Source: Penicillus capitatus (taxonomy: Eukaryota; Plantae; Chlorophyta). From it: a stretch of DNA of 64,000 bases. Below the pieces are notes generated by a model. It was given only the letters and a program-made list of their open reading frames with translations. It did no database searches and was not told the origin of the DNA. The number at the start of each line of letters is the position of its first letter. Positions within the stretch are counted from its first letter, which is position 1. A program made the translations under genes and the position numbers. The DNA is taken from the NCBI GenBank assembly GCA_965649825.1, contig OZ287701.1:733101-797100 (forward strand). Direction: 5' to 3'. Positions 7,234 to 64,000 of the stretch are shown piece after piece.

Positions 7234-10200
7234 CTACTGTGTTAGGCATTTGAGATTGTCTGAAAACAGAAATGCCTCTTTCCATAGAGCTTCCATTGCG
7301 TTCTCCACATTAGCACTGTCCAGGAATGGCTCGACGGCAGGAACAATGCGGACTTCAGTGATGTCACGTGGTTTGGCATATTGACCTTGCGCCAGACGGC
7401 ACGTATACTGTTCGGCCTTTCGAACGACCAGAGTATAGGGAACGCCAAATCCCATTTTGCGCTTTGTGTATTTGAATATAGTATACTCTTCCATATAATC
7501 GACGTCTAACTGACTGCTCTTTACATAGAGCTTCTTCTTATCGTCTCTGCCGATGGCATCGACAAAATCCGCTGCCAGTGCATGATCCTCGAGTTCTGTG
7601 ATCTCGCTCATCTGCCATTCAGAGAATCAAAAGAGTTCTGCCAGTACAGTGCAATGGTACCTACCTGCGTTTTGAGCATGAATCGGATGTCCGTTTCGCG
7701 TCCCTCCACTTCATCTTTATGACAGATACATTGCCGTTTGACATCGCTGACGATCCAGCGAAGCGGTGCCGTTTCGACACCGATAAAATTCAGCTTGGCA
7801 TCGTACCGTGCCGTCACGACACCCGTCCCTGTCTGCGCTACTACCTTGACGCCAATTTGATCTGCCTGTCGCGGCTTTGCATCGCCATCTGGTGAAGCCT
7901 CCTTCATTTTCTGTGCCAAAAAGGCGCGTTCTTTACCATCGAAGAAGACAGAAGAGACAAAGGAAGTCGAAATGAATCCTTCACCGCCGTGTTCTCTTCT
8001 AGGTGCACGTCGATGGTATGCTGAATCGAACATCGGATCCACAGATCGTGTTTTTCTGCGTTCCAGAGCCTTTAGCAATTCTTCCGTCGTCAAATGCGTG
8101 GCATCTTCGACGAAAGACTGAGGAGGACTGATGACATAGCTTCGGCCAAACTTGACCTGAATCTCGCATGGACCAGTGATGTCCACTGAATAGTGTCTTT
8201 GGAAGTGAGCCAGTTGACGTCTGAAGTGCTGCCTGAATTGATCATAGCATTCTGTATTGATATGATCCACAGGTGAAGCGGCAGGAAGGTCATGCAGACG
8301 AATCACAAAGAGCTTCTTATAGTCATGCTGCGGATACCTATAGCCTAAGTAAGGCTCCAGGCGAATCGAGGCTTGGTTTCCGGCGGCGGCTTCAATCATG
8401 AGATTGTGAGCACCTGTCACATCTTTTGCGCCCCTGGATACAGCAAACACCGACATCGAACCATGGATCCACCTTTGCCTTACCGAGTGCGCAGTGTCCG
8501 TCCAGTTTTCTGGCGTTCGGCTGCTCGCATGTGAAGACTCTCAATCTGTTTTGCCAACAGATAGAGTTCTGCCTCTGTTCCTGTTCCTTTGACGATCTTT
8601 CCTGGTTGCGAAGCTCTTTCTTGAGATTGAATGTCAACGAATGCTCTAGATCTCCGATGCAGCGTTCTGGCGAGTTCGTCCTCGTTTCCGATCACTTCAC
8701 ACGCTGCCTCGCGCTTGATAAAGAAAACTTTCTCGATGGTGATTTTTGTGAGTAAGACTGAGGCACTGATATGGAGCGACAGGTGCAAAGAGGCTTTGTC
8801 CATTTCGGCTATGAGCAGATCTAGCATTTCCTTTCGTGCTCCATCATTCCATCTTTCCATCTCCAGTGCCTGAAACAGGAAAACGCCATAGGAATGGAGC
8901 AAATGTCGTGATCGTGATGTGACAGACCGTTGCGAGTTCTGGATGGAGGCTCGATTGGATCAGATGCTTGCCTTGCTTCATGAAGGTGCACAGAAGACGA
9001 CCCACTCGACCAGATTTTCCTCCTTCCCAGCGTTCCTCACTGACGTCATCGTTTGGATCAGCCATCAGATTCTGATACAAGCTGTTCCATTCGCTTTGAG
9101 CACCAAAGCAATCGTTATAGAGCGGATTATCATAGAACTTCTCGACCGCCTCAGAGAACTGTCTCGCTGGGATTGGTCTTATTTTTTCCTCCTTCAGACA
9201 ATGATCGATGAACATTAGCGGCACCAGGTAATCTGGCAGGAAAAAGACGCGACCGCCCACCAATCCTGTCGTGTATATCCAAGTGCACAAGACTCGGAAG
9301 ACGGGGAAGAGCCATTGGTTCTTGAAGAAGTACTTCTTGATCACAATCCATTTAACAACTTCAGCCGGATCAGCAGAGAGTCGAGCCCATGTCCTGGGAA
9401 GCTTTCGGTTTAATCGGACTCTGAGATGACACTGTTTGTCATTCAAGCTCTGTTTTGCAAATAGAGAAGAGCATTCGGATTGCACTCTTTCCAACCGCAT
9501 CAATTGTTCTTCCTTGCTCAGGGATGTATTCCTTGAAAAATGCACCTGACCTCTCTTCTTCATTGCCACCAGAACACGCACTTCTCCTCTTGGCTCATCA
9601 AACAGCAGGAGTTGACTGGCACCGAAGAGCACACACGCGGCGACGCGATCACAGGCATCTCCCAGGACACGTGCCAGAGTCGTGTGATCTTTGTAAGTCT
9701 CGTACAATGTCCTACACAGCAGAGTCTTGCCGTCAGGGGAGGAAGGTTAAGGGCGCACTCAATCGTTCCGTCAAAGATTTCTTTGACACTGGCCGAGATC
9801 TCGGAGTAAATCGAGTGCGGAGATTTCGCCACAGAAGCTGCATTGCTGTAGATCTCGGCCAAAAGGTCATTCAGCATCCATGGAAAGCTCAAGAAATAGA
9901 GCATCTCTTTACCTGATACCATACATCTAACACATTTCGAGAAAGGATGTGTGTCTTACCCACAGAATACTGATCGCCATAATGAGGAGAGTAGGCAGCA
10001 TAGTACCAAGCAGACGCTTTCTTTCTCTCTTCTTCTCTGCCGTGATCCACATCCAGTTGTCGGTCGTTGTGAAAGATCGCCTTGTATTTCTTCACGATCT
10101 CCTTCAGCATGAACTTTACGTTCTTCTTGACGTCATCCATTTCGCTTTCGAGCCTGGGATGAACTGAGGCGATGGCTCCAGACCACACCTCTGCCTCTGT

Positions 10201-13200
10201 CTCAATTCCGTACATTCGCATGACGGACAGGATTTCTTGATTGTATTGTTTGAAGAGAATGCAAGCATCGTCTATGTAGTTTTCATATCCCTCGACCCTG
10301 AATGCCTTGTCTGGATGTGGCCGAGTGCTTCGCTCACTTGCTGCAGGATTGACGGTGTCTGTCGCATACTTGTTGCATTCCCTGAACATCGTCCCCAGAA
10401 CACGTATGGACGGATAACTTGGCTTGTCCGTTTTCATCATAAAATCCGGATACTGCTTGAGTTCAGATCTGATATCTGCCGGCAGATGTACCCAGTCTCC
10501 AGACTTAGGCGCATCCACTGCCTGTGCATGAATCTTGGCCAGTTGCAAACAGATATCGCTCTCCAATCCTTGCTGATCTGCCAGTGCCTTGTGTGTATTG
10601 TCAATCGTACCCAATGTGTCATTGGCAATGAACTCGCATATGTAGTCCGCCATTTGACTGAGTCGGACCTCCTCCTCGTTGTTCTTCTTGGCTCTCTCTT
10701 CGTATTCCATGGGCGCTTTGATCGGAATGCTGGGCAACAGGCGTGGATCCCAGATACAGTGATACTGATCTCCATCCAAATCAGAACCGGAGAGTTCGTT
10801 GGGATGCGGTCGCGGTCCCTTCTGGGGAAAGACGACACAGTCGACGAGATGGCGCAGCTGCGGGACATCCCTTCCTTTAAAAGTACGAACGTCCCCTGGA
10901 TGAATGCATGGATTCTTCATGATGACGATCTTGGAGGTAATCACACGGGTGTCTACCCCTGGGCGATGCAGCTGCTTCGATATCTGGATAAAAACCTGAC
11001 CGTACTCTAGCACACCTTCCTCGTCCATCACTCCAATCAACACGCGTCCCTTATCGTCATCAAGGCGGACTCTGGAACGTTCTCTCAGGTCTTTCATTTG
11101 CAGCCTTTGGCAGACGAGGCAACATCAGTCATAAGAGAAGGGATCGTGCAAGAGAGTGTACCGATAGCTTGCGATCATGATGCTGCGGAAGAACGCATCG
11201 GAAGTGAACTGGAATCGCACTCTTTGCAGATGATTGATGTCTTTGGATACAGTTCCCTGAAGAGCTTTGACTGCGGCTTCCTCCTCCACAAACATCTCAT
11301 TCATCTCTGCGATCTTATTCTTCAACAGAGCCTCAAAAACATCGTCTCTCACTCCCACATTGTTCAGCAACATGATAATCTGTATGGCGAAGACGAAGCT
11401 GTCGAGAAGGTGCAATGAAGAGGAATAACAGACCTGTTGGTTGAGATGCAAAGGGAGGGGACGTGTATACTCAAGCACTTCGATGTTTTTGCTCTCGGAT
11501 GGATACTTTGACATGCTGTCCCGTATTACTGGCTCATCGAGTTGATATCTATGTTTCCTGAAGAATTCATCTGGCCAGACAGACACCACGCCCTTGCATC
11601 CTCCGATTCTGATCTGAAATGCAGAAGGGATTGTTGACTGGTCCAGTGCATGCCGCTCCTTCACCTAATATATGAGACGTCACGTGCAGAAGACATGGTG
11701 AAGAGTCGCTTGCTTTCTTAGCCAAAGAGACCGAGATGAACCCAACACCATCGGAGAAACAATAACAACCCGATTCCACATCTGTCTCTTGGTAACACCG
11801 GCTCACAGAGATCGTCCGTGTCGATGTTGAAAATGCCAGTCCCAGTCTTGACATATAACGCGGCACATGTCGAATACCTAAAGATCACACACGACTTTGA
11901 AACGGCGCCCGAAGCCGTAACGCACCAGAAAGGTCTCCAATTGCATTCCGAATTCTCTCTGCAATCTTGTTGTCGTCGTCTTCTCGGATGAAGTAGCAAG
12001 AATGTGCACGTATCTGACTGTTCGATGCGGCCAAGTAGACATATCGATCCGGACCGATTTCTATTCCGTTTATCAAGATATCATGCACTCGATTCGTGAT
12101 GAGGGACAGATCTCCATGAAGACTTGTCAAATTCTCACAGTTTTCATCGCGAATGGCCACGCGAATGAAGATATCGGGAGTGTGCTGCCGCACAATGCGA
12201 TTCGTCTAAGGCACCATTCCATGCCTCACCAACACGAGCGTAAGAGATCGTACTTGGACTAGATCTGGTTCATAGAAGCGAAGTGACGTCGGTGTGATGA
12301 TGACTCGCTTCATGTAAGCATGATTCCAGCTCGGCGGGCTGAACTCTGGAGTAAAGTTTGCTGACTCCCGCTCTCGTATCATGAACCGGACGGGGTCGCA
12401 GAAGAGCTGTTTGGACGTCACCTTTGTCAGCTCGTATATCGCTCTGACGGCTTCATGAGCTTCCATAGAGTTGAGAATCTGATGGAATCGATTGTTGATG
12501 CGTTCGGCAACGAATCCAGGCGTGCTCATGAGACAACGCATTGCGTAGTTCACTTCGGGATCCTGTCTGTGGACACAAGAGCGTGTGAAATTCAGCCATG
12601 CTTCGTCTTCACGAAACGGCCTTGTGTTGCATACTGTCTCCACAGATGTAAAGTGCACGGTCACTCCTGACGATTCCAGCAGCTTCAACACTTCGCGCAC
12701 TCGATGGTCAATGAGATTATGCTGAGTAGATGATCGTGGGTTCGGTATCTCCAGCTTGTAGGTGAGGCAGTTGGAAAAGATATGACGGCTTTCTGAATGA
12801 ATGTATTCATTGACGCGTCGTGCACTTTCCCTGACGTCGCCATCAGACAGCGAGATTTCGCTCAGACGTGGAGTCTGTGCAAAAGTGAGATAGAGAATGA
12901 GAATGGCATCCTCTGTGTTGTCACTCTCTTGAAAATCCACCAAGGCAAATTCCCTCAGGTCTGCGAAGGATGCCTCTATCTGCAACTTATCGTTTACGAT
13001 GATGACAATCCTGTTAGATCCACGTTCTAACCGTAGACTGCTTGCATTTCCCAATCGCATCTGCTGCGTATACAGCCGTTGCCATTTGAGTGACCCCAGG
13101 GATGTCTGATGTAAGCTCAGTCTCAGTGTTGTTGCTCTGGGGAAGTAACTGGGCCGATTCAATACCGTTGTCCAGATGTCGAACTCATCGGACTGAAAGA

Positions 13201-16200
13201 TGTCGGAAGTAAAGAGCTCCAGAATTTTCTTTTCAAAGCAACGTGTGTTTTCTTCATCCGTGTTCTCCTTCAACGTCAGCATGGCTTCTGAAAAATAGTT
13301 CGTGCTGATGGAGTTCTCAATCTTCACTATTTTGTCGATCCACTCGGTGATCTGGAGGACATCGTCATGCGTTCCGCGAATGATATTTTTGATGAAGGCA
13401 ATAGCTTTCTTGTATATCTCATCGTCCGAAACGAAGATGGCAAAACGCACAGCGATCTTCCACTTCTCCGACTCCTCCTCGTCGAGGAACGGTAGCTCTT
13501 CTGGATAGGCGCCAGCGACATTGATTTGATTCATGATGTCCTGCATTTCGTTCAGCTCTGTTTCTGAATATCTGTTCTCTTCTGTCTCTAGCTCTTCGTG
13601 TTGAAATGTCTTCCTGCCTGAAGCTTCTTCCAAGGCCAACACCTTTTTGCTGTGCGCTTCGGTTGGATCAAAACAATAGCCCGGCTGCATCATCTTCTGG
13701 ATGACGCTTGCTTGGGTCTGCATAAAGTTCAAGTAAAACTGTTGCCGACTCTTCTCCTTTTCATTTCTGCATATAATATAGAATTTGCCGTTTGATGCTC
13801 GACAAGCGCGTCCTCGGCTCTGGATAAACTGTCGAAGATTATCGGGCGCCTTCATGCGGATCACCATGTTGCAGGATGGCACATCCAAACCTTCTTCGAG
13901 AATAGTCGTTGTGACCAGCAATCTAATCTGACCACGTCGAAAATCATTCAGGATCTCCTGTTGCTCTTTAAGCAGCAGACCATCGCCACAGATACCTCTA
14001 CCAACAATGACTTGAGGATTGAGTGCCGTCCGAATACCCGATATCTGCGACAGACATCTGCAGAGTTTTTGTGCCGTTCTTCGCATGTCGACAAACACCA
14101 GAATTCGTGAGTCCCTCCCGTTCTCTTCTTTATGCTTCTCAATCATCCCAATCATCCTCTTGCACTTCTCTGAGAGGAGATGGCGTTGGAAGACATCATC
14201 GTTCTTGGTCTTTGAGCGGACGTGCTGAAAAAGAGTCGCGTAGAGAGGCCGACGCGTTTTGAAATCCTTATCGAATCTGCAGACACAGAGCGGGTCCGTA
14301 TTCGATGCTGTCAGAGGGAGGGGCGTCTAAACGGACCCGTGTAGCACTTCTTTCTTCCATTGCTCCTGTCCCGGTGAAGGATCGTCAATGCCGCTGAAGA
14401 CTTTCTTCAACTGCTGCATAGCGATCTCATGGCCAATAATGTTGTTGATTTCATGGACTGCCAAGAGCTGATTCATATGATCTCTCACGGCTTGGCTGCA
14501 GAAAGAGAGATACGTCTACGTTACTGTCTACTGGCAGAGACATACCCATAGCAGATGGCTTCTTTCTGATTGCGGAATTCGGTTTTGTTAAGAGCCTCGT
14601 TCAGTTCATCTTCTATCTTTCTGAGCTTTCCACGGAGTTTGTTGGTGTCGACCTCCTGATTGTCTCCTCCGGTCAATAGACTCTCCAGTTGACTGAACTG
14701 TGGGGCAATTCTTGACAGGCGATGATGTGTCGCTCGAGTGACTTCACGCATGTAGTTATCGACTTGTTGTTTAAACTCGAATTCAGGTTGTTCCTGGCTG
14801 GGATCCACCAGAAAGACAATATCACTTGTGCGATGTATTCCGTTGTCATACGGATCATTCTGACGAGGATAGCAAGGATGGCAGTGTAGCTTCTCGGCTA
14901 TACGACTGATGTCTCTCTTGACCGTTGACCCCGTAGAATCACTCTTCGGATTGTCCAATGGAGATGCCGTCATTCCCATGATCAGAGGTCTGGTGGATGG
15001 ATCTACACTTGTAGCGATTGTTCGAGTAAACAGCTTTGCGTAGGGACTGCTTCCTTTGGCCTCGTGGGCTTCGTCCAAAACCAAGCAGCAGAGATCCTCT
15101 ATCCTTACTGTATTGATCTCGATCAGCGCATTGAGACATGCACATGTGCAGACCAGGATATCATATTGGTATTCACCAATGACCTGCAAAGATGGTATTG
15201 GCATACAGTGAAACAAACAGTCAGCAATAGCATCGCACTTTGAGGTGCTCTCTCCTCTGGTCTGGATCCATCTGACCAGACAGGGTGACGACTTTGGAAG
15301 CGGAGAGTTCAGACTGAATGGCGAAGGACTGCTGCTCGACAAGGTGATTGGTGTTGACCACAAAGACAGCCACTTTGTGGGGATTGATGTGCAGCATCGC
15401 TCTCAAGACACCGGCTGCCACGAGAGTCTTGCCCGATCCTGTTGGCAGACAGAGCAAGCTGTTTTGTCTCAGGCAGAAATTCAGCATCTCCATCTACGTC
15501 ACATCGTCTCACACAAATGAGATCTGTCACATCACAGACTTGATAATTCCGCATCTTCGTAGCGGTGAGTTGCTCCAGGGTATCTTCGGATGTTTGATCG
15601 ACATCAACACGGACCGTGGGATATGTGCGTTTTCCCTCACGACTCCAAAACTTCCGTCCCGTCTAGACGTCACATCTCGAAAATCAGAATGATCATCCAG
15701 ATGACTTGACGGACCCTTCGCATGATGTCTTTTTGTGTGATGGGTGGCACACCACACGTTTCCAAATCCGTCAGCAGTCGTTTCCACTTGTTCTCGCTTT
15801 TCCTTTCGCCATTTGGAAACATCAAGGCAACATGTTTCGGACGGATTTCGTCGTAGGCCGTTTCGGTGACGGCATCCGAGTGACATACGCCGACCTTCTT
15901 CTCGCAGTTCCTAACGATGCGGCTTGAGCGTGTACCGTCTGTCGTTTTTTGCATTTGTGTACCTGCAGTTGATCGTCCAACCGACCTCATCGTTTCCCGA
16001 TTCATATTTTTCGCGTCGAAACGTCGCGTTGCTCTTCTTGAGTGCGACCTGTGCGCGCAACATCTGATGCATCCTTTCGAAGAAATGTCTTGAAGCTGGC
16101 AGCACCTCAGGACGGACGATAAGTTTGTTTTCGTTCTTCAAGATCGCCAGCTGTGTGAACGTATACAGCTCTGCCGAACAGTAGCGGCACTCGACTTTGC

Positions 16201-16210
16201 AAAGCGACAT
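7234..16210 (-). CDS. Giant multidomain RNA-silencing protein: RLR-CTD-like Zn domain + DExD/H (Dicer/RLR-type) helicase + RNA-dependent RNA polymerase + TUTase-like NTase + KH-like + C-terminal domain
   Basis: Helicase Q-motif MRNYQ, Walker A LPTGSGKT, DEAH, TAS, ILVFVDMRRTA, TTILEEGLDVPSC, QSRGRA; RdRP motifs SRLGLAFS, FSDGVG, SAFQIRIGGCKG, KNPCIHPGD, catalytic SGSDLDGD (10768-10782), LSFPW. Junctions traced in frame with GT-AG sites plus one GC-AG. Confidence 0.85.
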
Positions 16211-16892: not shown

Positions 16893-17264
16893 TTAGATGG
16901 CTCCCGTCAGACGCGAGAGAATCGCCAGTGCTGCAATGAACAATCCGATATAGAGAAACCAGTTTGCCCCCATCGCCACATTCTCTGTTCCGCCCAGTCC
17001 AACATACTCATCCCGCATCCGATTCCGCATCTCTTTTGACAAAGGCGTTCTCGTTGGCTGCTTCAGATCGTCAATATAGACCGCTTTCTTCTCTTCGGCT
17101 TTAGTCTCCTCCACCGTCGGAGGCGTCTCATCGACGGGCTGCTGCTCGGCCCTTAGGCAACGCGGATTGCGTCGCCGGGGGAGAGACGAGAATCGAAAAG
17201 GGCGTGTGGTTCGACAGGCATCGAACGGGGTAACTGGAATCGAAGTCGAGATCGTCGATAACAT
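16893..17264 (-). CDS. Small plastid-targeted protein with a C-terminal transmembrane helix
   Basis: Intronless 123-aa ORF: Ser/Thr/Arg-rich transit-peptide-like N-terminus, acidic linker, then EYVGLGGTENVAMGANWFLYIGLFIAALAILSRLTGAI. Confidence 0.7.
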   Translation of the reverse strand: MLSTISTSIPVTPFDACRTTRPFRFSSLPRRRNPRCLRAEQQPVDETPPTVEETKAEEKKAVYIDDLKQPTRTPLSKEMRNRMRDEYVGLGGTENVAMGANWFLYIGLFIAALAILSRLTGAI

Positions 17265-20731: not shown

Positions 20732-21886
20732 ATGATCGGGATCCGGCCACCGGACGTGGCATCTAAACGCTTCGTGACGTATACTCGGGCCAATGTGGGG
20801 CTCCATGCAGTCACGCATCCTCTGTCGTTACGTGGACGCCTCTGCGGTCGAAGACGCCGACGGGGGTCGGAATTACGTCCAAGGGCATCCTCTATCCCCT
20901 CAGATCCTTATCAAGTCGTTGCATGATGCATGTTTTGAGAGGAAACTGTTTTCTGGAGGGGTTCAGGTTTTGGGAGTGTCGAAGAAAGTGAGTGCGGACG
21001 GTATTCAGCGTGCCTATCGTAATAGACTGAGAGAAGCGCAGATCGCAGGAGATGAAGAACTGGTCAATGTTATCGAACAGGCGCATTCCTCGATTATGAT
21101 GGAACAACTCAAAATGCGAATGAAGGTGGCGCTGAGTATACCATTGACTTCTCTCACACTTTCTCACACTTCCTAAGGGTCAGACAACCGTTTCACAAGA
21201 CATTGCCTATGCCGACAAAGCAGTCTATCTCCCATGGAGACCCAGGCAAGCTATAGGGCAAACCAGGGGAGGGATGGAGACAGGGGCGTGCTGTAGGTGG
21301 TGTTTGGCAGATCGAAAACTGATGTGGATCTCCCTCGCCATTCAGCTGGCGCTTCTGCTCTATTCCGTGGCCGTCGGACAGATGACAGGCACCCAACCTG
21401 TTCTCGCATGTAGATTCCGACATTACTGATCTCATACAGCCCTACCTCATGTGTCTTGTTAGCATGCATTGCGTGTGCAGCCATTGTCTACTTCAAATTG
21501 GAGAAGCTCTTTCCATCGGGTGCAGGAGTGGCCTTCTCTGCAGATGCGAATGAGCGCAAACAAGGTCACTGCTCATCGAACACAGTGCCGTGCCTGACTG
21601 AAGTGACCGTCGCCTTGTGAAGGTGGCAAGAATCTTTTGCGAGCCGTTGCTGTGGCGTTGATGGGGACAGCATCAGGCATTGTCTTTTTCTTCACATTGC
21701 CAGATCTGATTTCGAATAGCATCCTGCACAAGCCATTGCCTTTTTGGATGTATGACTTTCAGGTGCGTATCCCTATCGATCGAATCGGAGGCCGGTGGCA
21801 TCTTACAAGAGGCTGTTTTGTAGGACACTGTTTTGACTGCAGGTGCCGTTTTCATGAATTTGATCTTGTCTATTTTCTTCAGGTAA
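20732..21886 (+). CDS. CPP1: CPP1-like (chaperone-like protein of POR1, J-like domain) plastid membrane protein; start uncertain
   Basis: Spliced DPYQVLGVSKK...IQRAYRNRL...IEQAHSSIMMEQLKMRMK, ADKAVYLPWRPR, followed by TM helices; includes GC-AG intron 21246-21296. Confidence 0.8.
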
Positions 21887-27182: not shown

Positions 27183-29433
27183 CTAAGCGTCCGTGATACA
27201 TCCTCTCGAAGCACTTGTCACTGTCTTGATGTATCGATAGAGTGTGCCTGAAGATGCTTTGAGTGGTGGGGATTTCCATGCGGCTCTACGAGCATCCATC
27301 TCTTCTGCCGAGACATGAACGTTAATGGATCGCTTCTCGGCATCAATCTCGATCACATCGCCGTCCTTTACGAGAGCAATGGGTCCTCCCTCTTGCGCTT
27401 CGGGCGTTACGTGACCGATCACAAATCCGTGAGAGGCGCCAGAGAAACGGCCATCGGTCATGAGGGCGCAGTGCTGACCCAGACCGGCGCCCATAATGAC
27501 GGAAGTGGGATTGAGCATCTCTGGCATACCTGGGCCGCCTTTAGGCCCTTCGTAGCGAATCACGACAACACTGCCTTTGAAACGACTTGGATTCTCGGCC
27601 ACGGCATCGATCATATCTTCTTCGCAGTCAAAACAGAGCGCCTGTCCCTTGAAGTAGAACCCCTCCTTGCCTAGAAATGCGTGACATGAATGAGAAGTGG
27701 CGAGAAAGTGAGACCAGTGATCTTGGCGACGGATCCTTCAGGAGCAAGATTGCCGTAAAGAATCTGGATATGTCCTGTGGGTTTGATGGGCTGCTCCAGA
27801 GGCCGAATCACATCTTGGCCTTCTGAGAGAGGACGCAGGTCTGTCAGATTCTCCTCTAGGGGTTTTCCTGTAACCGTCATGCAGCTTCCGTCCAGCAGAC
27901 CCTTCTCCAATAGATACTTCTGAACCGCAGGTGTCCCTCCGACGGCATGCAGATCCGCCATGACATACTGTCCACTTGGCTTTAGATTGGCCAAATAAGG
28001 CACACGATCACTGATCTTCTGAAAATCATCGATCGTCAGGTTGATCCCTACAGAACTGCAGCAGAATGAGAGAAGTGGCTAAGATGTCGATGTCTCTCAC
28101 TGTGCAATGGCTATGAGATGCAGAACAGCATTTGTGGATCCGCCCAATGCCATCACCATCGTCATCGCATTGTCAAAGGCAGCACGTGTCATGATATCTC
28201 GTGGTTTCAGATCCATCTCCATCATCTTCAGCACTGCTTCTCCTGCCATTCTACCCCAAAGCATTCTCCTGCCTTTCAGCCAGAGAAGATGAAACGCACT
28301 CGCATTCCTTTAGCTTCTGTGGGTCCATAGCGGGAGTCGATGAACTGTAGGGCAGGCTCATTCCGAGCGTCTCGATGGCAGACGACATGGTATTGGCCGT
28401 GTACATACCACCACATGCACCTAAGCAACGCAGCAGTGTCATGACGGTTGGCTCATTTCTGCCCACCTGCTCCGGGACATGCGTGACGGACAACGTCAAA
28501 GCGCTCTTCTTCTGTCATGCGGCCAGAAGAGAAGGCGCCGAATGTCTGGAAAGCTGCTTCAATGTCAATGGGTTTAGCGAGCAGTGTGCTTCTGCCAGCC
28601 TGGATGGTGCCGCCGTAGATCATCAGCGCCGGACGGTTGAGACGACCGATAGCGATCATGGTCCCCGGCATGTTCTTGTCACATCCTGGAACGCATAGAA
28701 GTGTGATGCGCAAAAGAGTGAGAGCAACGCACCGGGAAGAGTGATCAGCGCGTCATACCATTGAGCTGACATGACGGTTTCGACCGAATCGGCGATCAAA
28801 TCGCGCGACTGGAGGCTGAAACTCATCCCATCCGTCCCCATCGAAATGGCATCGCTGACGCCAACCGTATTGAACCTATCATACTCGATCGATCGAATCC
28901 GAAGAGTTATGGCATACCTGAATCCAACGAGTCCCGTCGATTGGACACCTTTCTTAACATGCTCCGAGAGATCCAGCAGATGCATGTTGCAGGGATTGCC
29001 CTCAAACCATACAGACGAAATCCCAACCTCATGGCACCAGTCCTCTCAGGAGTGCCGTATTTCGTATGCGGATCCAACTTGCGGGCGATTCATGTCATCT
29101 TCCACTAACTTTGCTCCATAGAGCATCGCTTGGGAGGCCCCCTGCTGTTTCGGTTGAGTGACACGTTGACTGAATTTGTTAAGTCCTGCACAAACATATC
29201 TTTTTAGATTGGTACACATGGGAACGGATATCGTTGCCGGAAGGGATCGGCTTTTTCTTTTCTTTCTGAGCATCTGGTGCTGTGGCGGCCGCGCGAACGA
29301 TGTGTGGACAGGTGGGGATTCGCGATCGTCGTAAGGCATGATCGTTACGACATCTTCTCCATCGTCCAATCGCACGGCCTCCTTGAAGCCTCCAGATCGA
29401 TGCGCCGACGTTCACAACGTTGGCAAGCGTCAT
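27183..29433 (-). CDS. ilvD: Dihydroxy-acid dehydratase (organelle-targeted)
   Basis: [94 protein letters not shown]. Confidence 0.97.
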
Positions 29434-33233: not shown

Positions 33234-33564
33234 ATGAGCGTCTTCCATGACGAAGTGGAAGTCGAAGATATGGAATGGGACGAAGAACTGCAAGCTTTCA
33301 CTTACCAATGCCCCTGCGGCGACCTCTTTCGTATCACACTTGTGCGATGGTCGCTAATATCACGAGCTCAGGAGATGACACAACTTGTAGGCAGAACTGG
33401 TATCGGGTGAAGAAATGGCACACTGTCCGAGCTGTACACTCTACATTCGTGTGATCTACGATCCAGTCACTGCATCTCCGCTCCTACTCCATAGATAGAG
33501 CGTCTTGACGTAGGAGGATTTTCATGAGATGGAACCCGAGACGCCGATTGTTGAGGTTAAGTAA
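33234..33564 (+). CDS. DPH3: DPH3/KTI11 CSL zinc-finger protein (3 exons)
   Basis: Spliced [61 protein letters not shown]. Confidence 0.95.
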
Positions 33565-34938
33565 GAGACGTCACATCATAGGAAGATGGAAGCCAGTTTG
33601 CAAAAAGGGAAGGGCTGGACTGCAGCATCGCCCATTGTGACTTGTATTCAAAGGACGTAGTAACGTCTCTCAGACATCGATAACGGATGGATAACTGTTC
33701 TCTGGAGAGACGCGACTGAAATGTGTGAGGAATGGACGTGTGAGGCTTCTTTGGGAATTTTGGACTGCCGAGACGTATTCCCGAATTACCCAATGTCACT
33801 TCGTGTACACCTCCACACACGAATCTCTCACTCTTCTCTCCTTCGGTCACACTCTCCGTCAATACACGCGTCCAATTTATGCATGTGTTGGAGCGCTCTT
33901 TGCGCATTGCATCTGAACGGAGAAACAGATCGGCGGGCGGCGGATCGGCGACGTCGATTCGTAGAGGTCTCCATCTAGAAGGCCACAAATGAACCACCGA
34001 AAGTGTGACGACGATCGGGGACTCGAAAGGAGACTGCACTCGATTGGCAAGATGTGCACCCCGTGTCACGAATGCACGTTGCATAGAGGAGCGAAGCTTC
34101 TGAGCACATTGGAGGTGCGGTGTACAGACAATAATGGATGAGAAGTAGAGTGGGTGCGAAAGGAGCGAAAGCATCTGCCTTCCTTGAAATCCAAGAAACG
34201 ACCAACGCAAAATCTTATCACTGCATGACATCGAAGTCGTTGCCTCTCCCTTCCCTAAACACAAGTGTCGATTCGACATCTACCCTGTTGATCATGGCCG
34301 ATCCGATTCGCACCCGGCTTTCGACGTAGAACACCGAGCTGTGGTTGACCGGATTCGACATCGTTTGCTTCGGGAATATTGCCCGTCTCACACTAGAGAA
34401 GAGTGAGAATCGCTAGTACATCGCGGAATGGAGATACATGAATGGGTTTGGCACCGGTGCGCAAAGCGGACTCCGTGTCTTCCGGCATGACGATGGCAGC
34501 ATCGCCACAGGGAGGCTCCGTAACAACCAGATGAAAGGACACGTCGTTTTTTAGCTCAATGATTCCGTGTCTATTGCGACAGAGAAGCAGAGAGTCTTCT
34601 TTGACGTTGCCATCAGATGGGCCATTGTCATCAAGGCTCAGGTACTCGATTTCGCGAAGAACGCAATCGACGGCTGCTCGCTTGGCCAGGACTTCGGCAT
34701 GAGCGTCGTTGATGCGCTGAGGCGATGCCCAGCGACATGGCAGGCACTTTGTCCCTGTCGCCAGCGATGTCACACGTACGTCTTTGCCAGATATCGCGAC
34801 GACCGCTGCAAGGGTGGTGTATTCATGGGCCTGCGGTTTTCCTTTCTTCGGAAGTTTTCGAAACAGCTCGAAAACGTGATTGACGATCGTCGTTGTTGTC
34901 ACGACGTCGTCATTCAATTTTCGTCGTTTCGATTCCAT
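33557..34938 (-). CDS. ADAT1: tRNA-specific adenosine deaminase 1 (Tad1/ADAT1)
   Basis: LATGTKC, DAHAEVLAKRA, PPCGDA, LRRKPGKGEATTSMSCSDKILRW; no dsRBD seen. Confidence 0.9.
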
Positions 34939-34995
34939 CCGAACCATAAACCCAAACATGCACGACGATATCGATGCGATTCTATCGGTCGCGCA

Positions 34996-35225
34996 CGCGA
35001 TTTTCGCACAGTTGATCGATGGGATTCCGATTGTGATTGATAGGCAGTTGATCCATACGATCGCGATTGATGCGAACAAAGTTGATTGCCTTCGCGATTT
35101 TCGCACAGTTGATCGATACGATCGCGATTGTGATTGATAGGCAGTTGATCGATACGATCACGATTGATGCGAACGAGTTTTATTGCCTTCGCGATTTTCG
35201 CACGGTTGATCGATTCGATCGCGAT
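34996..35225. repeat. 97-bp tandem repeat (~2.4 copies) with internal subrepeats, GATC/CGAT-rich
   Basis: cgcgattttcgcac(a/g)gttgatcgat recurs at 34996, 35093, 35190; subunit cagttgatcgatacgatcgcgattg occurs about twice per unit. Confidence 0.88.
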
Positions 35226-36358: not shown

Positions 36359-39100
36359 TTAAGCGACGCTTAGTGACTCATTCTGGACAGAGAGAACATT
36401 CTCTGTCTCCTTGACAGATGTCATACGATGCCCAATCGTTGAGGGCTGCTCGGGACCAGACGTTAAAGTACTGCTGGGACTCGTGCAATGAATAAAAGAC
36501 TCCTTGGCGTGAGACTTACTCGCTTCGGATTTGCGTCTGAAGTCATCGAGAGTGGAGTACTGCTTCTCAATCAGCTCCCGCAGTTTAGGATTCACATGCA
36601 CGTCATGAGATTCAGGGATCCTGCCGTAATGGTGAAACGCCCAGAATTTCTCCAATCCATACAGACTGCCTTGCTCGTAGTCCATCAGGGTCAGATCTTC
36701 GAAATCGCTGTACAGTTCATCATTGAAGCGAGATTCGAGTCCGTAGCTGTAGAAATTGAATAGGCATTCGATACCGTAATGGCCTCCCTCTTCTCGATCT
36801 TCAATGGCAAATTTCTTGAAGTCGGTGTACATCCGTGAATTGAAGTTATCTCTCAGGAAGTAGCACCAGAAGCGATAGAGTGTCCGCATCTCTTCAGATT
36901 TGCCGTATCCTACACAACCAGCTATCTATGAACGATCTGCATCTCTTAGATGCTCGACAGGACCTTTTGAATTACGGTCTCTTATACAACGGGAATAGAA
37001 TTTGTTGTAGTGAACTTGAACAAAGTTCCCGTCCTTTAGGTGTGCGTGACCTGGATGGTCGAATCGGGGAACAGACGTGCCAAGATGTAGACCCTCTACG
37101 GTGGGCGATGTGCCACTGCTACACACGAGACGCTTTTTGTGACAGTGATGATTGGGATACGGTTGCACCTGGGACTGCGATTGTGTGATGAACTGCCAAG
37201 GACCCAACCGACAGACGGTGAATGCCGGACTTGGTTTTCATCAACAGACCTATATACACCGCTTGAACACCGACATAGATCTCATCAGAATGATGTGACC
37301 TTTTACGCAGGTGTGCGGACGTGTTCTTTGGTAAACTTGAAGAAAAGAAATGCTGTCGAGGCTCATGGCCGGGACTCCTCGCAGGAAACGGCTAAACGTC
37401 ACATCATGCTGTATGTAGAACACAGATCTCGTGTATCATTGAGATGCTTGCCTGTATTTGGTCCTGATAATGCGCCAGGCCCTCGTTTATGACGGATGCC
37501 TCTCCTTTGTCAATCGTGCCTCCCTTTGTATGACTCCCTCCCTAAATCCAGCCATTCTCAGTTAGACACCGTTCTCACAATGGCACCGAGAGACATGGCT
37601 TTGAATCAGAACAATCAACCGATCAAGATCCCGATCAACAAACTCATCTTGATGATCTTGAGTTGCATAGTTTTCCTTAGCGCGATCCTAGTCACATCAT
37701 TCCTTGAATAAATGTTCACAAGGCAAGGAGTAGAGCGCACTTCATCGAACTCGAAGACATCCTCCGTGGAGTGCCGGTTCTTTTCTTCGGACGAGTAGGG
37801 TTTCGGTGTGTAGGGTGCGCGTTCGACAGGTACGTGATCCAGTTGCTGTTGATTTTCTGGCAGTACCCATTTTTCGTAGTCTACATCCGCATCACACGAC
37901 GGTTACTCGATTGCCTCAGTCAAGAGCATCTGATGGACCTTTTGTTCGGATGAATGACATGTCTTCAGACACATCCACTTTGTCACTGCTTAGCAGTGCT
38001 TCCAAAATCATGTACCGGTCTGTTGTGATGTGCTGCAACCTACACACAAGTAGTCCATGGATTGCTGCCGGATCTGAGAGCGAGAGAGAGGCGGCCGTAC
38101 ATGTGGAATGTCATAATAAGAGCAAGGGGAATCCAACCATCCTTGTCCATTTTTCCTCTCACATACAGATCTCTGTGAAGATTCTCTTCGCTCATATAAT
38201 ATTCAATTTGTGTTTTAGCAGCTTCTGCAATGCGTTCGCGGGTGAAGGGGGCATGCATTGGCAGTGGATGTCCAGGAGGAAACAGCATTCCTGGAACGGG
38301 TGGAACGGGGGCATATGGCATCGCCGAAATATACATGGGATGCATCATGGGGACATGAGGGTAGATAGGAGGATGCATTCCGGCCGACGGTGGCATATTG
38401 AAATAGATACTGTCATGGGAATGTGACCGAGGCGGTCCAGCCCTTCCCCGTCCCGTTCGACCTCTCCCACTATATCTCCCCCGTCCACGTACCCCCTGCA
38501 CATATCTAACACACCTCACACCCTCAAACCAACACTGGAGGGCCAAACAAACCTGGGAGTCGCATCTCTTGGAGTCTGAGGATGGGCCGTCGTTACCGCG
38601 GGCGACGGCTCCATCGTTCGTTCCACTTCACTAGACTCCTTGTTCTTTGAGACGCCGCCGGCACTAACACTGCCGTTGTTACTGCCGCCATGACTCAGTC
38701 GTATCTCCGTCTGAGTGGACGACCGTCGATGCGATGATTTATCTTTATCGACGTGTCGAAATCCCTTTAGCAATCGATCTTGTTTAGCATGATAGAACAT
38801 CTGATCTCGATCTTCGGGGGCAAGAGGGACACCACGTCGACTCAAGCGCGATTTTCGATTGCGGTCGATGCTGGTAGAAGAAGTCTTGTCCCTTGGTGTT
38901 GATGACCCTTTGGTTGATTTCTTCTTGACATACTGTTCTTGCGATTGACCCAAGGTTGGCCATGCTTCTTCGGAATCGGCAGTCCATGGTACTTTGGCAG
39001 TGGCTGCCGGATGTTTTTCGTCATCGGAACGACTGCAGATGGAATGTCCTCCCGAACTGCTAGCGGATTTTTCGCTTCCGCTGGCTGCTCCTTGTTGCAT
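36359..39100 (-). CDS. LARP1: La-related protein 1 (La motif + DM15 repeats)
   Basis: La motif [31 protein letters not shown]; DM15 [17 protein letters not shown]...[15 protein letters not shown]...[13 protein letters not shown]. Confidence 0.93.
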
Positions 39101-48886: not shown

Positions 48887-50817
48887 ATGTCGAACGTCCT
48901 GCGCGTGGCCCCGCTGCGTCGTCCGTTTTTCTCTGCTGCTTTGCGTTTTCCGAGCCTCTTCGGTCAGAGCTTTCGTCCTGTAAACGCCATTTCTGTGCTC
49001 TCCTCTTTGGAAGACTCTAACGACAGGAGAGGAAGACGGATGGCTGTGGCACTCGGCTATCGGCATCGGCGACGGATTATACGGCAGACCTTGTTCCTTC
49101 TAAGAGCCTCGCTGCCTCAGTGACGGCGCCTCCAGCATCGACGAATCCTCACGATGCGATTCCCAGCTATGGTGGGTCAACCGAAAAGACCTGCGGATAC
49201 GTATGCGACGCTGTGGTTCAGGAGGCGAATCAGGAAACGGGAGTCATGCCAACTGGGCAAAACTGACGTCGGAACGGGTACCGACACCGCGTCAGATTTC
49301 CAGAGACCTAGATAAATATGTCATCGGTCAAGCACATGGGAAAAAGGCATGCATGTGTGGAAACGACGAAGAAGCTGTAATGCTGTGCTGATGTGACAGG
49401 TGCTGTCTGTGGCGGTGTACAATCACTACATGCGTATCTCTCATGAAGAAGCGCGACAGAGACAAATGCGTCCGCTGCAAGATGATCCACTGCAATCCCC
49501 AAGATCCGGCAGCCATGCGCACTGGACGCCGCCTATCGGTAGCTTCTTTACAGCTTCCGCTTTCCAAACGCACAAGTGCTCTTTAGGTATCGATATGCCA
49601 ATGGGGGCCAACATGACACGCGATATGGGAGACTACAGCCACAAAGTTTTCGATTCGGGCAGCTATCGCAGTTCAAGTGATTTCAGCGACAGTGATACAG
49701 AACAGTTTCCAATGTTCGATTCGGGGGTCGAGTTGGACAAGAGCAATGTCCTGATCATGGGTCCTACTGGATCTGGAAAGACACTGCTGGCCAAAACGCT
49801 TGCTCGCCTCATCAATGTCCCTATTGCCATTGCAGACGCTACGACATTGACGCAGGCGGGGTATGTGGGCGAAGACGTGGAGTCCATTCTGTACAAACTG
49901 CTGGTGGCTGCAAAGTTTGACGTGGCGGCAGCGCAGACAGGGATTGTGTATATTGACGAGATTGACAAAATCGCAAAGAAAGGCGAAAATCCCAGCATTA
50001 CGAGGGATGTCTCCGGAGAGGGCGTGCAGCAAGCATTGCTAAAGATGCTCGAGGGAACAGTCGTTAATGTTCCTGAGAAGGGCGGACGCAAGAACCCGCG
50101 TGGCGATTTTGTCCAAGTCTGCATTCTTCCTCTGTCATCCAACCTGTTTCATCAGGAGAGGTGTTTGGGTAGGTGGATACGAAGGATATTCTATTTCTCT
50201 GCGGTGGGGCGTTTGTGGATTTGGATCGTCAAGTTGCTGAACGTAAAGCGGAGGCCTCAATGGGCTTTGGCAATCCTGTCCGTGCCAGATACGCCAATAA
50301 TCGCAAAGAGGGTGCGAATGTTCCGGACGAAGCCCTTCTGGAAGTCGAGCAGCAAGATCTCATCAGCTACGGTCTCATTCCGGAATTCGTTGGCCGTTTT
50401 CCCATTCTCTGCGCTTTGCAATCGCTGACGGAACCTGAATTGATGCGTGTTCTGTTCGAGCCACGCAATTCCTTGATTCGCCAATACCAAGAGATCTTGG
50501 CCAAGAGTTGTGCACAGCTACACATTACAGACAAGGCGATGCAGAAGATCGCCAAAAATGCCAAAGCCAAAGGCACCGGTGCACGTGGTTTGAGAGTCAT
50601 TATGGAGAAACTGTTGCTCAATGCGATGTACGAAGTGCCAGATCTGCAAGATGAAGAACCAGTGGTGCTCATTGACGAAGAGAGCGTCATTCACAGAGGC
50701 TGTGCTGGAGGACTGCAATCAGGTGGTGCACGAGTGCTGACAGGAGACGCAGCAGAGCCGTATCGATCTGAAGCAGGATTTCAAGAGTTTGAGGCTGAAG
50801 TAGCAGAAGCCAGTTGA
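48887..50817 (+). CDS. clpX: ATP-dependent Clp protease ATPase subunit ClpX (mitochondrial type)
   Basis: [86 protein letters not shown]; presequence-like N-terminus. Confidence 0.96.
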
Positions 50818-50926
50818 TGAACGTGCCTTGGCAAGTTGTTTGATGTCTGTGTACAAATTTGTTATGTACTGGAGAGAGCTGTGTAGAGTACAAAACAACG
50901 CATATTGTCATCAAGTGTTCATGGAA

Positions 50927-51000
50927 TGCTCCTTCGGGGGATTGAACCCCGGACTTCCGGCTCATAAGACCGGCGCTCTAACCGACTGAGCTAAAGGGGC
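50927..51000 (-). tRNA. trnI-UAU: tRNA-Ile (anticodon UAU), intronless
   Basis: Cloverleaf GCCCCTT TA GCTC AGTCGGTTA GAGC G CCGGT CTTATGA GCCGG AAGTC CGGGG TTCAATC CCCCG AAGGAGC A; A and B boxes intact. Confidence 0.93.
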
Positions 51001-51833
51001 ACACCAGCAGAAACGTCTTACACGTCAACCTGACCTCATGGGCACTGTGAGAGATGGATGGCAATGTGTTGGCAATATGTTTTGCCCGTTTCATCACAGA
51101 GAAGGCTGATCGACGTTATTCCGGCGGCTGAAGAACGCGAAGTCGTTGAATGGTTTGACAGGACCTCCTTGGTTCTCATATAGTGCCTCTTTAGTGTTGT
51201 GCATCTATGTACGAGGCCATGGCCTGCCAACAGTCCAATCCATTTTTGCCTCAGGTGTGTGGAGAAGAACGATGAAGATGGCTATGTCGTGCAGGAGATC
51301 GTAAAAAATACGAAAGCGGCACGTCCGCGACGATAGAGCATGCATTGGTGTGATGACGATTCAACAGCTGAATACGTCTTTCTAGGGAGTCGAAGACTTG
51401 GCGGAAAAAGAGTATCCCGTTGTGCTTTTATGTTTCGATTGTCCTGAATCTGCGTCTTCCCCGACGGCCGAAACGCAGTGAACGAACAATGTTGCCCTGT
51501 AGATGAAGAGAGACAGATAGATCCTTTGACGTTGCATCGAAATCGTGCGTATTCGCTTCCGGCTGATTGTTGATTCGTTCGAAAGTATCAGAATTGCAGG
51601 CCGTCAACGTTGTCAAAATGCGCCAAGGTCGCGGTCGAGAGAGGCCCCTGCTCCAGGATATCCCTGCCAGAAATGAAACCGAGATCTCAATGATCCGTTC
51701 TCGGTCCCCACAGTAACACGCGATTTGTCAGATCAGAAAGCACGGATAGTAACACCCATGCATAAGCTCGACTCACGCCTTCATAGAACAGAATCTCGTC
51801 ACGATGTCCTCGTCTTCGCATTCTTCCACGATA

Positions 51834-55869: not shown

Positions 55870-64000
<8,131 letters not shown>

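Follow-up and report, generated by a model that had tools for sequence, protein, structure and literature searches.

The 5' end of a large gene for a fusion of helicase and RNA-dependent RNA polymerase (RdRP), located on the minus strand of a 64,000-nucleotide stretch of the Penicillus capitatus genome (GCA_965649825.1, contig OZ287701.1, positions 733,101 to 797,100, hereafter the window), encodes a four-cysteine module which, by sequence threshold, by its putative zinc ligands and by its predicted beta-tent fold, is a member of the family formed by the C-terminal domains (CTDs) of RIG-I, MDA5, LGP2 and the nematode DRH proteins. The gene extends from an ATG at 16210 to a stop codon at 7234, its spliced product begins with MSLCKVECRYCSAELY, and hand curation guided by relatives resolved it into 18 exons and 17 GT-AG introns of 46-60 nucleotides (nt), giving a protein of about 2,698 amino acids (aa) in which the zinc module (residues 1-129) is followed by a linker, a DExH helicase, a spacer of about 460 aa, the RdRP and a tail of about 800 aa. 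The reading favoured here, to which a probability of roughly 0.7 is assigned, is that the module at 15715-16210 is a domain of the CTD family of RIG-I-like receptors (RLRs) as well as DRH proteins, placed at the start of the helicase-RdRP, and that it would bind an RNA terminus or duplex end as an end-clamp, the binding part of this reading being drawn from sequence and from analogy.

A profile search of 1.84 billion representative proteins gave 14 proteins, all of them members of this family of helicase-RdRP zinc modules, and these fall into three groups. The first is the clade of the window, with L004 (an ortholog of 60-80% identity on a 1.67-Mb contig), L001 (from a Logan assembly) and L002 (an ENA contig, a 1.2-kb fragment ending inside the first helicase lobe); the second is an Ostreobium clade, with P0001 from the green alga Ostreobium quekettii (locus L005; GCA_905146915.1, CAJHUC010000358.1); and the third has the sea anemone Actinostola (KAK3698051.1; locus L006) as its only named member. 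A search with the single window protein found no relative in the JGI metagenomes. The spliced module of 129 aa carries two cysteine pairs, C8xxC11 and C63xxC66, whose spacing agrees with the RIG-I-like spacing described in the initial annotation, as 51 residues separate the pairs in the window and 50 residues lie between C813 and C864 of human RIG-I (a sequence checked against published residue numbers). The four cysteines, predicted to bind zinc, align with RIG-I C810, C813, C864 and C869 and are invariant in all 12 members of the family alignment, as are L15, G71 (RIG-I G874) and L113. The earlier claim of a terminal K.W segment resembling the RIG-I/MDA5 CTD is likewise supported, with K105-W106-K107 aligning with RIG-I K907-W908-K909.

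Against the Pfam family RIG-I_C-RD (PF11648), whose gathering score is 25.6, the window module scored 30.2 bits, with an E-value of 5.8e-7 and a match to model positions 2-109 of 117, and for this reason the arrangement of cysteines is not attributed to chance. Comparable scores were observed for L004 (31.9 bits), L001 (35.2) and Ostreobium P0001 (31.3), while L002 (24.8) and one further relative (16.8) fell under the gathering score, and all 11 members of an earlier family alignment matched PF11648. The corresponding Yippee-Mis18 (PF03226) scores were 18.7 bits for the window module, below the cut-off of 26.6, and 21.0, 25.4, 19.0 and 18.5 bits for L004, L001, P0001 and L002, respectively, so that RIG-I_C-RD was ahead by 6-12 bits in every member tested. 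Alignment of the 12 modules with four animal RLR CTDs by hhalign gave a probability of 93.3% (E 2.8e-7, 102 columns). The 12-sequence profile, searched against the PDB, matched the duck RIG-I CTD (1.6e-7), chicken MDA5 (8.9e-6), DRH-1 (5e-5) and DRH-3 (4e-4) over the full domain, versus Mis18 (0.012) and YPEL5 (0.76) over a stretch of only about 30-40 residues at the second zinc knuckle. Only profiles succeeded, as searches with the single module sequence (word-indexed search, and phmmer against the PDB) gave no match.

The AlphaFold2 model of the spliced module had a predicted local distance difference test score (pLDDT) of 82.5 and a predicted TM score of 0.76, with no segment below 50. When compared with the PDB by Foldseek, this model had DRH-3 or RIG-I CTDs at ranks 1-28 (TM 0.60-0.67, root-mean-square deviation about 3 A, about 112 columns, 17-19% identity), with the DRH-3 CTD structures 6m6r and 6m6s at the top (TM 0.62-0.67), followed by Mis18 at rank 29 (E 4.6e-4, deviation 6.7 A), bacterial cereblon at rank 47 (E 4.7e-3) and YPEL5 at rank 48. 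The structural comparison with Yippee- and cereblon-type folds that had been proposed for this locus thus places the predicted model nearest to RLR/DRH CTDs.

A generic Yippee/Mis18/CULT-like beta-tent zinc domain, serving oligomerisation, protein contacts or a small ligand with no role at RNA ends, is an improbable alternative. Yippee, Mis18, cereblon CULT and MsrB domains have the same superfold and zinc site with weak sequence matches, as expected from families close in sequence space (PMC4287342); Yippee-Mis18 is always the second Pfam match, at best only 1.2 bits under its cut-off, Mis18 and cereblon do appear in the Foldseek ranking, and several RIG-I contacts to RNA are lost in the module. 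These domains nevertheless score lower throughout, their profile matches are partial, and Mis18 superposes with about twice the deviation of the RLR/DRH CTDs that occupy the first 28 ranks; they also lack the K-W-K tail and an association with a helicase, whereas the module has the RLR-specific K-W-K and the basic residue at the K888 position and is fused to the same helicase family as in RLRs. Pfam, hhalign, the PDB profile search and Foldseek agree with the assignment to the RIG-I/MDA5/DRH CTD family that had been proposed at the outset, and not with Yippee/Mis18/CULT.

The splice model, known here from the DNA, was derived from GT-AG sites, from frame logic and by comparing relatives. Both introns previously placed within the module, one of 52 nt and one of 57 nt in frame, were confirmed by these comparisons (introns 2 and 1 in Table 1). 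Reading through the 52-nt intron hits a stop codon, and introns of L004 and L002 match its position and phase. The 57-nt intron is taken as real because its position is also occupied by introns in L004, L001 and L002 (56, 43 and 48 nt, respectively), two of which, in L004 and L001, are frame-shifting; the common codon boundary lies after RPE, RPD, APE or HPE in the window and its relatives, and the second CxxC of L001 (C-M-N-C) is recovered only with its 43-nt intron removed. Removal of intron 1 raised the RIG-I_C-RD score from 24.3 to 30.2 bits and eliminated a region with pLDDT below 50. The module read through this intron, with 70 residues between the cysteine pairs, a score below the Pfam cut-off and a low-confidence helix, was rejected on the comparison with L004, L001 and L002, and its AlphaFold2 model gave the same Foldseek ordering. 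Introns 3 and 4, which are additional to the initial annotation, lie between the module and helicase motif I; L002 and L004 have an intron at the position of intron 3, and the frame downstream of it is supported by the conserved linker of about 40 aa, whose P, D, L and R.YQ do not vary across three clades. Intron lengths are strikingly uniform across the gene, with G at +5 in 10 of the first 14 introns, and several introns (57, 54 and 48 nt) are multiples of three without stops, which allows silent read-through. The public open reading frame (ORF) calls for this contig and for related ones (P0030, P0032, P0041) are incomplete or include translated intron, with P0030 called in prokaryote style.

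That the module lies N-terminal to the helicase, as originally proposed, and shares one chain with it is borne out by P0002, P0033 and P0034, in each of which a single uninterrupted ORF runs from the module through the helicase into the beginning of the RdRP. That the module is instead separate from the helicase-RdRP, as a small gene, an untranslated leader or a set of chance cysteines, has a very slight probability; the splicing is read from genomic DNA and the public calls on the contig are fragmented prokaryote-style ORFs, yet this explanation is already contradicted by the evidence at hand, namely the single ORFs just named, intron positions conserved in four related genomes, frame-shifting introns that make sense only if spliced, the conserved linker and the Pfam E-value. 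There is also no exon upstream and nothing else encoded from 16211 to the next gene, which ends at 16893. The window protein starts seven residues before its first zinc ligand, and in homologs of every clade the start lies 3-10 residues ahead of the first cysteine.

The same architecture recurs in L001, in L004, in Ostreobium L005 and in Actinostola L006, with L004 and L001 showing the same order of zinc module, DEAD, Helicase_C and RdRP. The earlier description of the module as permuted stands as a statement of domain order, with the module at residues 1-129 and helicase motif I at residue 187, and is not upheld as an actual permutation event. The annotated Ostreobium P0001 (1,187 aa) stops short, and RdRP exons follow at 16195-24126 of L005; the Actinostola locus is annotated as two gene models, of which the downstream one has the RdRP together with weak nucleotidyltransferase matches (NTP_transf_2, weak, and MTPAP-like_central), so that the family may also include a Cid12-like nucleotidyltransferase. 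Because public gene calls are fragmented or truncated, including these two annotations, the architecture is invisible in current databases. The idea of an RLR-like domain outside animals is supported by the non-animal host of the window, as judged from its IlvD and CPP1-like genes, and by the green alga Ostreobium, and it is limited by the anthozoan Actinostola, which has the same architecture. At L005 (1-3894 and 10001-24126), a divergent paralog of 2,571 aa (DEAD, Helicase_C, RdRP) was observed head-to-head upstream of P0001, with introns of hundreds of bases versus 46-60 nt in the window.

The RNA-contact residues of RIG-I are partly retained. In the alignment with human RIG-I, the K888 position corresponds to R87 and is basic in 10 of the 12 family members, and the K907 position is K or R in 11 of them; among the triphosphate and end contacts of RIG-I, only the K888 and K907 equivalents are retained in the window protein, although the K861 position is basic in seven of the 12 members. 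Since some RIG-I contacts are kept and others are not, a nucleic-acid-binding face on the module is plausible, while specificity for a 5'-triphosphate cannot be read from its sequence. Several observations weigh against the favoured reading. K858 and K861 are replaced by V57 and T60 in the window protein, the end-stacking F853 falls in a gap, H847 corresponds to K49 and to Asn in most members, and the cnidarian clade has Leu for the core Trp at the W908 position. The identity to RLR CTDs is just 15-19%, the AlphaFold2 model was built on a 14-row alignment, and the profile search of 1.84 billion proteins gave no RLR at library-wide significance, so that the link between the module and RLRs is drawn from Pfam, PDB-sized searches, hhalign and the predicted fold. 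The splicing of the locus, in turn, depends on GT-AG sites, frame logic and relatives.

The probable role of the module is to hold RNA ends on behalf of the helicase-RdRP, by analogy with DRH-3, which acts in this way in trans for nematode RdRPs. The module would bind an RNA terminus or duplex end through a conserved basic surface made up of R87, K105, K107 and the basic loop at 39-48, and together with the helicase it would form an end-clamp and translocase keeping the RdRP on the template-product duplex, as a possible single-chain counterpart of the nematode DRH-3/RRF-1 partnership. The recognised end could be a 5'-triphosphate, a 5'-monophosphate or a blunt duplex, on either the template or the product. 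In Caenorhabditis elegans, the RIG-I homolog DRH-3 binds the RdRP RRF-1 and is required for 22G-RNAs, and its CTD prefers 5'-triphosphates, the signature of RdRP products (PMC8464030, PMC3590228); the mode proposed for DRH-3, in which the 5'-triphosphate end of the product of the RdRP would be bound, is at least as plausible here as the selection of templates by 5'-triphosphate or blunt ends. The term sensor, which the initial annotation had used, finds no support in the immune-receptor sense, as the protein is without a CARD or other signalling domain.

Another possibility, judged quite unlikely, is that the module acts mainly as an intramolecular regulator gating the helicase ATPase or the RdRP without choosing an RNA end. 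The RLR CTD does have a 'repressor domain' role in RIG-I and LGP2 (PMC4287342, PMC8464030), the short conserved linker would permit docking on the helicase, and the triphosphate pocket is incomplete; however, regulation and RNA binding are coupled in one domain in RLRs, which makes such a role compatible with an RNA-end clamp, the conserved basic positions point to a nucleic-acid surface, and an autoinhibited partner such as a CARD is absent.

The rest of the protein was characterised in the same way. The helicase, with its ATPase motifs intact (PTGSGKT at residue 187, DEAH at 292, TASP at 327 and QSRGRA at 673) and about 230 aa inserted between its RecA lobes (after TASP and before the second lobe), belongs by sequence to the Dicer/RLR group of duplex-RNA-activated ATPases, because its closest solved relatives by phmmer are the ancestral Dicer helicase (1e-39) and LGP2 (8e-31), followed by Dicers, Hef, MDA5, RIG-I and FANCM. 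After the helicase, neither a CxxC pair nor a PF11648 match was found in the window protein. The RdRP match covers model positions 1-582 of 582 (E 2.4e-155) with an intact DLDGD at residue 1602, and it is an alpha-clade eukaryotic RdRP whose closest named relatives are those of Ostreobium (44%), Porites (39%) and plant RDR1 (about 38%). The last four exons (7234-9710) encode about 770 aa past the RdRP, conserved in L004 and L001 and for the most part also in Ostreobium L005 and L007, with no match in Pfam or the PDB at E<=5. The idea that the tail is a nucleotidyltransferase found no support, as neither the window protein nor a four-sequence profile matched anything in the two databases at this threshold.

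The window protein shares with the RLR CTDs (RIG-I, MDA5, LGP2) a two-sheet beta-tent, predicted here, a putative C4 zinc site with two CxxC-type knuckles about 50 residues apart, an invariant Gly after the second knuckle, the K-W-K near the end, the basic K888 position and an attached Dicer/RLR-type helicase. In RLRs, however, the CTD is C-terminal and follows a pincer, whereas the module comes before the helicase and is not preceded by a pincer, and the window protein has no CARDs, continues into an RdRP, has no equivalents of K858, K861 and F853, and comes from a non-animal host. CARD signalling to MAVS is a property of RIG-I and MDA5, and CARDs are absent in LGP2. Because the domain order is reversed, a CARD is lacking and an RdRP is attached, the window protein is not an RLR. 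DRH-3 and DRH-1 of C. elegans offer the same trio of CTD, duplex-RNA-activated helicase and RdRP (RRF-1/EGO-1, in 22G-RNA synthesis), but the nematode complex keeps the helicase-CTD apart from the RdRP, in two proteins instead of one chain, the position of the CTD is reversed, and DRH-3 has its own N-terminal domain and a long extra C-terminal helix. Dictyostelium RrpA-C carry a Dicer-like helicase fused to an RdRP, and the Schizosaccharomyces pombe RDRC complex consists of Rdp1, the helicase Hrr1 and Cid12; both systems resemble the window protein in coupling a superfamily 2 helicase to a eukaryotic RdRP for small-RNA amplification, and the nucleotidyltransferase-like region after the RdRP of the sea-anemone homolog recalls Cid12. 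We know of no report of an RLR-CTD-type zinc domain on the RrpA-C or RDRC proteins, and none of these helicase-RdRP systems was among the close relatives in the family searches.

According to a published report, the RIG-I regulatory domain is detectable in animals alone (PMC4287342). A protein joining an RLR-CTD to a helicase and an RdRP was not found described in the literature covered, which is no proof of its absence elsewhere. The architecture is new and made of known parts. It represents a 'Rosetta-stone' fusion of the nematode DRH-3/RdRP partnership and a concrete, expressible protein in which the coupling of RNA-end recognition to RNA-templated RNA synthesis can be studied, and it places the RIG-I domain family in a eukaryote that is not an animal as well as in a green alga. 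A tentative and rather doubtful proposal is that the pairing of an RLR-type zinc domain with a Dicer/RLR-type helicase was an older machine for the amplification of RNA interference (RNAi), or one exchanged between algae and cnidarians, serving an RdRP, and that animal RLRs and nematode DRHs would be derived from or sister to such an RdRP cofactor, their domains having been reordered and the polymerase either lost or separated. If true, the pairing would not be an animal invention for interferon-style sensing, and the family provides phylogenetic material on whether RLR-type sensing arose from RNAi amplification.

Table 1. Coordinates of the helicase-RdRP gene and of the other genes observed in the window.
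Feature	Position	Strand	Remarks
Exon 1 (M1-E35)	16106-16210	-	start codon and first zinc pair C8xxC11 (16189-16178)
Intron 1	16049-16105	-	57 nt, in frame, GTGCTG...CACAG
Exon 2 (V36-C63 plus 2 nt)	15963-16048	-	basic loop region and third zinc ligand C63
Intron 2	15911-15962	-	52 nt, phase 2, GTACAC...GTTAG; splits second CxxC (TGC AG/G AAC TGC, slash at the intron)
Exon 3 (R64-R129)	15715-15910	-	C66, invariant G71, R87, K105-W106-K107 (15792-15778 region), C-terminal helices of module
Intron 3	15663-15714	-	52 nt, frame-shifting
Exon 4 (T130-Q170)	15540-15662	-	module-to-helicase linker, ends in RNYQ
Intron 4	15494-15539	-	46 nt
Dicer/RLR-type DExH helicase	13700-15493	-	exons 5-8; Pfam DEAD, ResIII, Helicase_C
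Helicase motifs	PTGSGKT 15445-15425; DEAH 15075-15064; TASP 14970-14959; QSRGRA 13822-13805	-
Introns within helicase	15238-15184; 14545-14496; 14336-14277	-
Family-specific spacer	12311-13699	-	about 460 aa; no Pfam match; kept in P0001, P0002, L004 and L001
Eukaryotic RdRP (PF05183)	9872-12310	-	five short introns; DLDGD 10782-10768
Tail	7234-9871	-	about 800 aa; exons conserved in every clade; ends at stop codon 7234
123-aa ORF	16893-17264	-	Ser/Thr/Arg-rich transit-peptide-like N-terminus, C-terminal membrane helix
CPP1-like ORF	20778-21173	+	28.0 bits versus cut-off 28.4
Dihydroxy-acid dehydratase (IlvD)	27186-29045	-	intron-split; ILVD_EDD_N, ILV_EDD_C; PF00920, PF24877
ADAT1-like adenosine deaminase	33557-35106	-	A_deamin in two exons; no double-stranded-RNA-binding domain seen
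LARP1 HEAT/DM15 region	36359-36889	-
ClpX-like AAA ATPase	49400-50428	+
tRNA-Ile	50926-51001	-	anticodon TAT; sole match of Rfam and tRNA scans
HUWE1/Tom1-like E3 ligase	56453-63984	-	very large; UBA, UBM, HECT; includes a single ORF of 1,854 aa

The neighbouring genes bear on the nature of the host. Animals are without a pathway for the biosynthesis of branched-chain amino acids, to which the IlvD gene belongs, and the CPP1-like ORF, just under its cut-off, resembles a chloroplast family, the chaperone-like protein of POR1; with both genes in the window, the host belongs outside the animals and is probably photosynthetic, and the CPP1-like and 123-aa ORFs together give a hint of a photosynthetic host. 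The ADAT1-like, LARP1 and HUWE1-like genes, by contrast, carry no diagnostic value for the host. The helicase-RdRP gene has an ATP-synthase epsilon gene and a RING-finger gene as neighbours in both L001 (3270-3554) and L004 (18455-19084), which suggests conserved synteny within the clade of the window.

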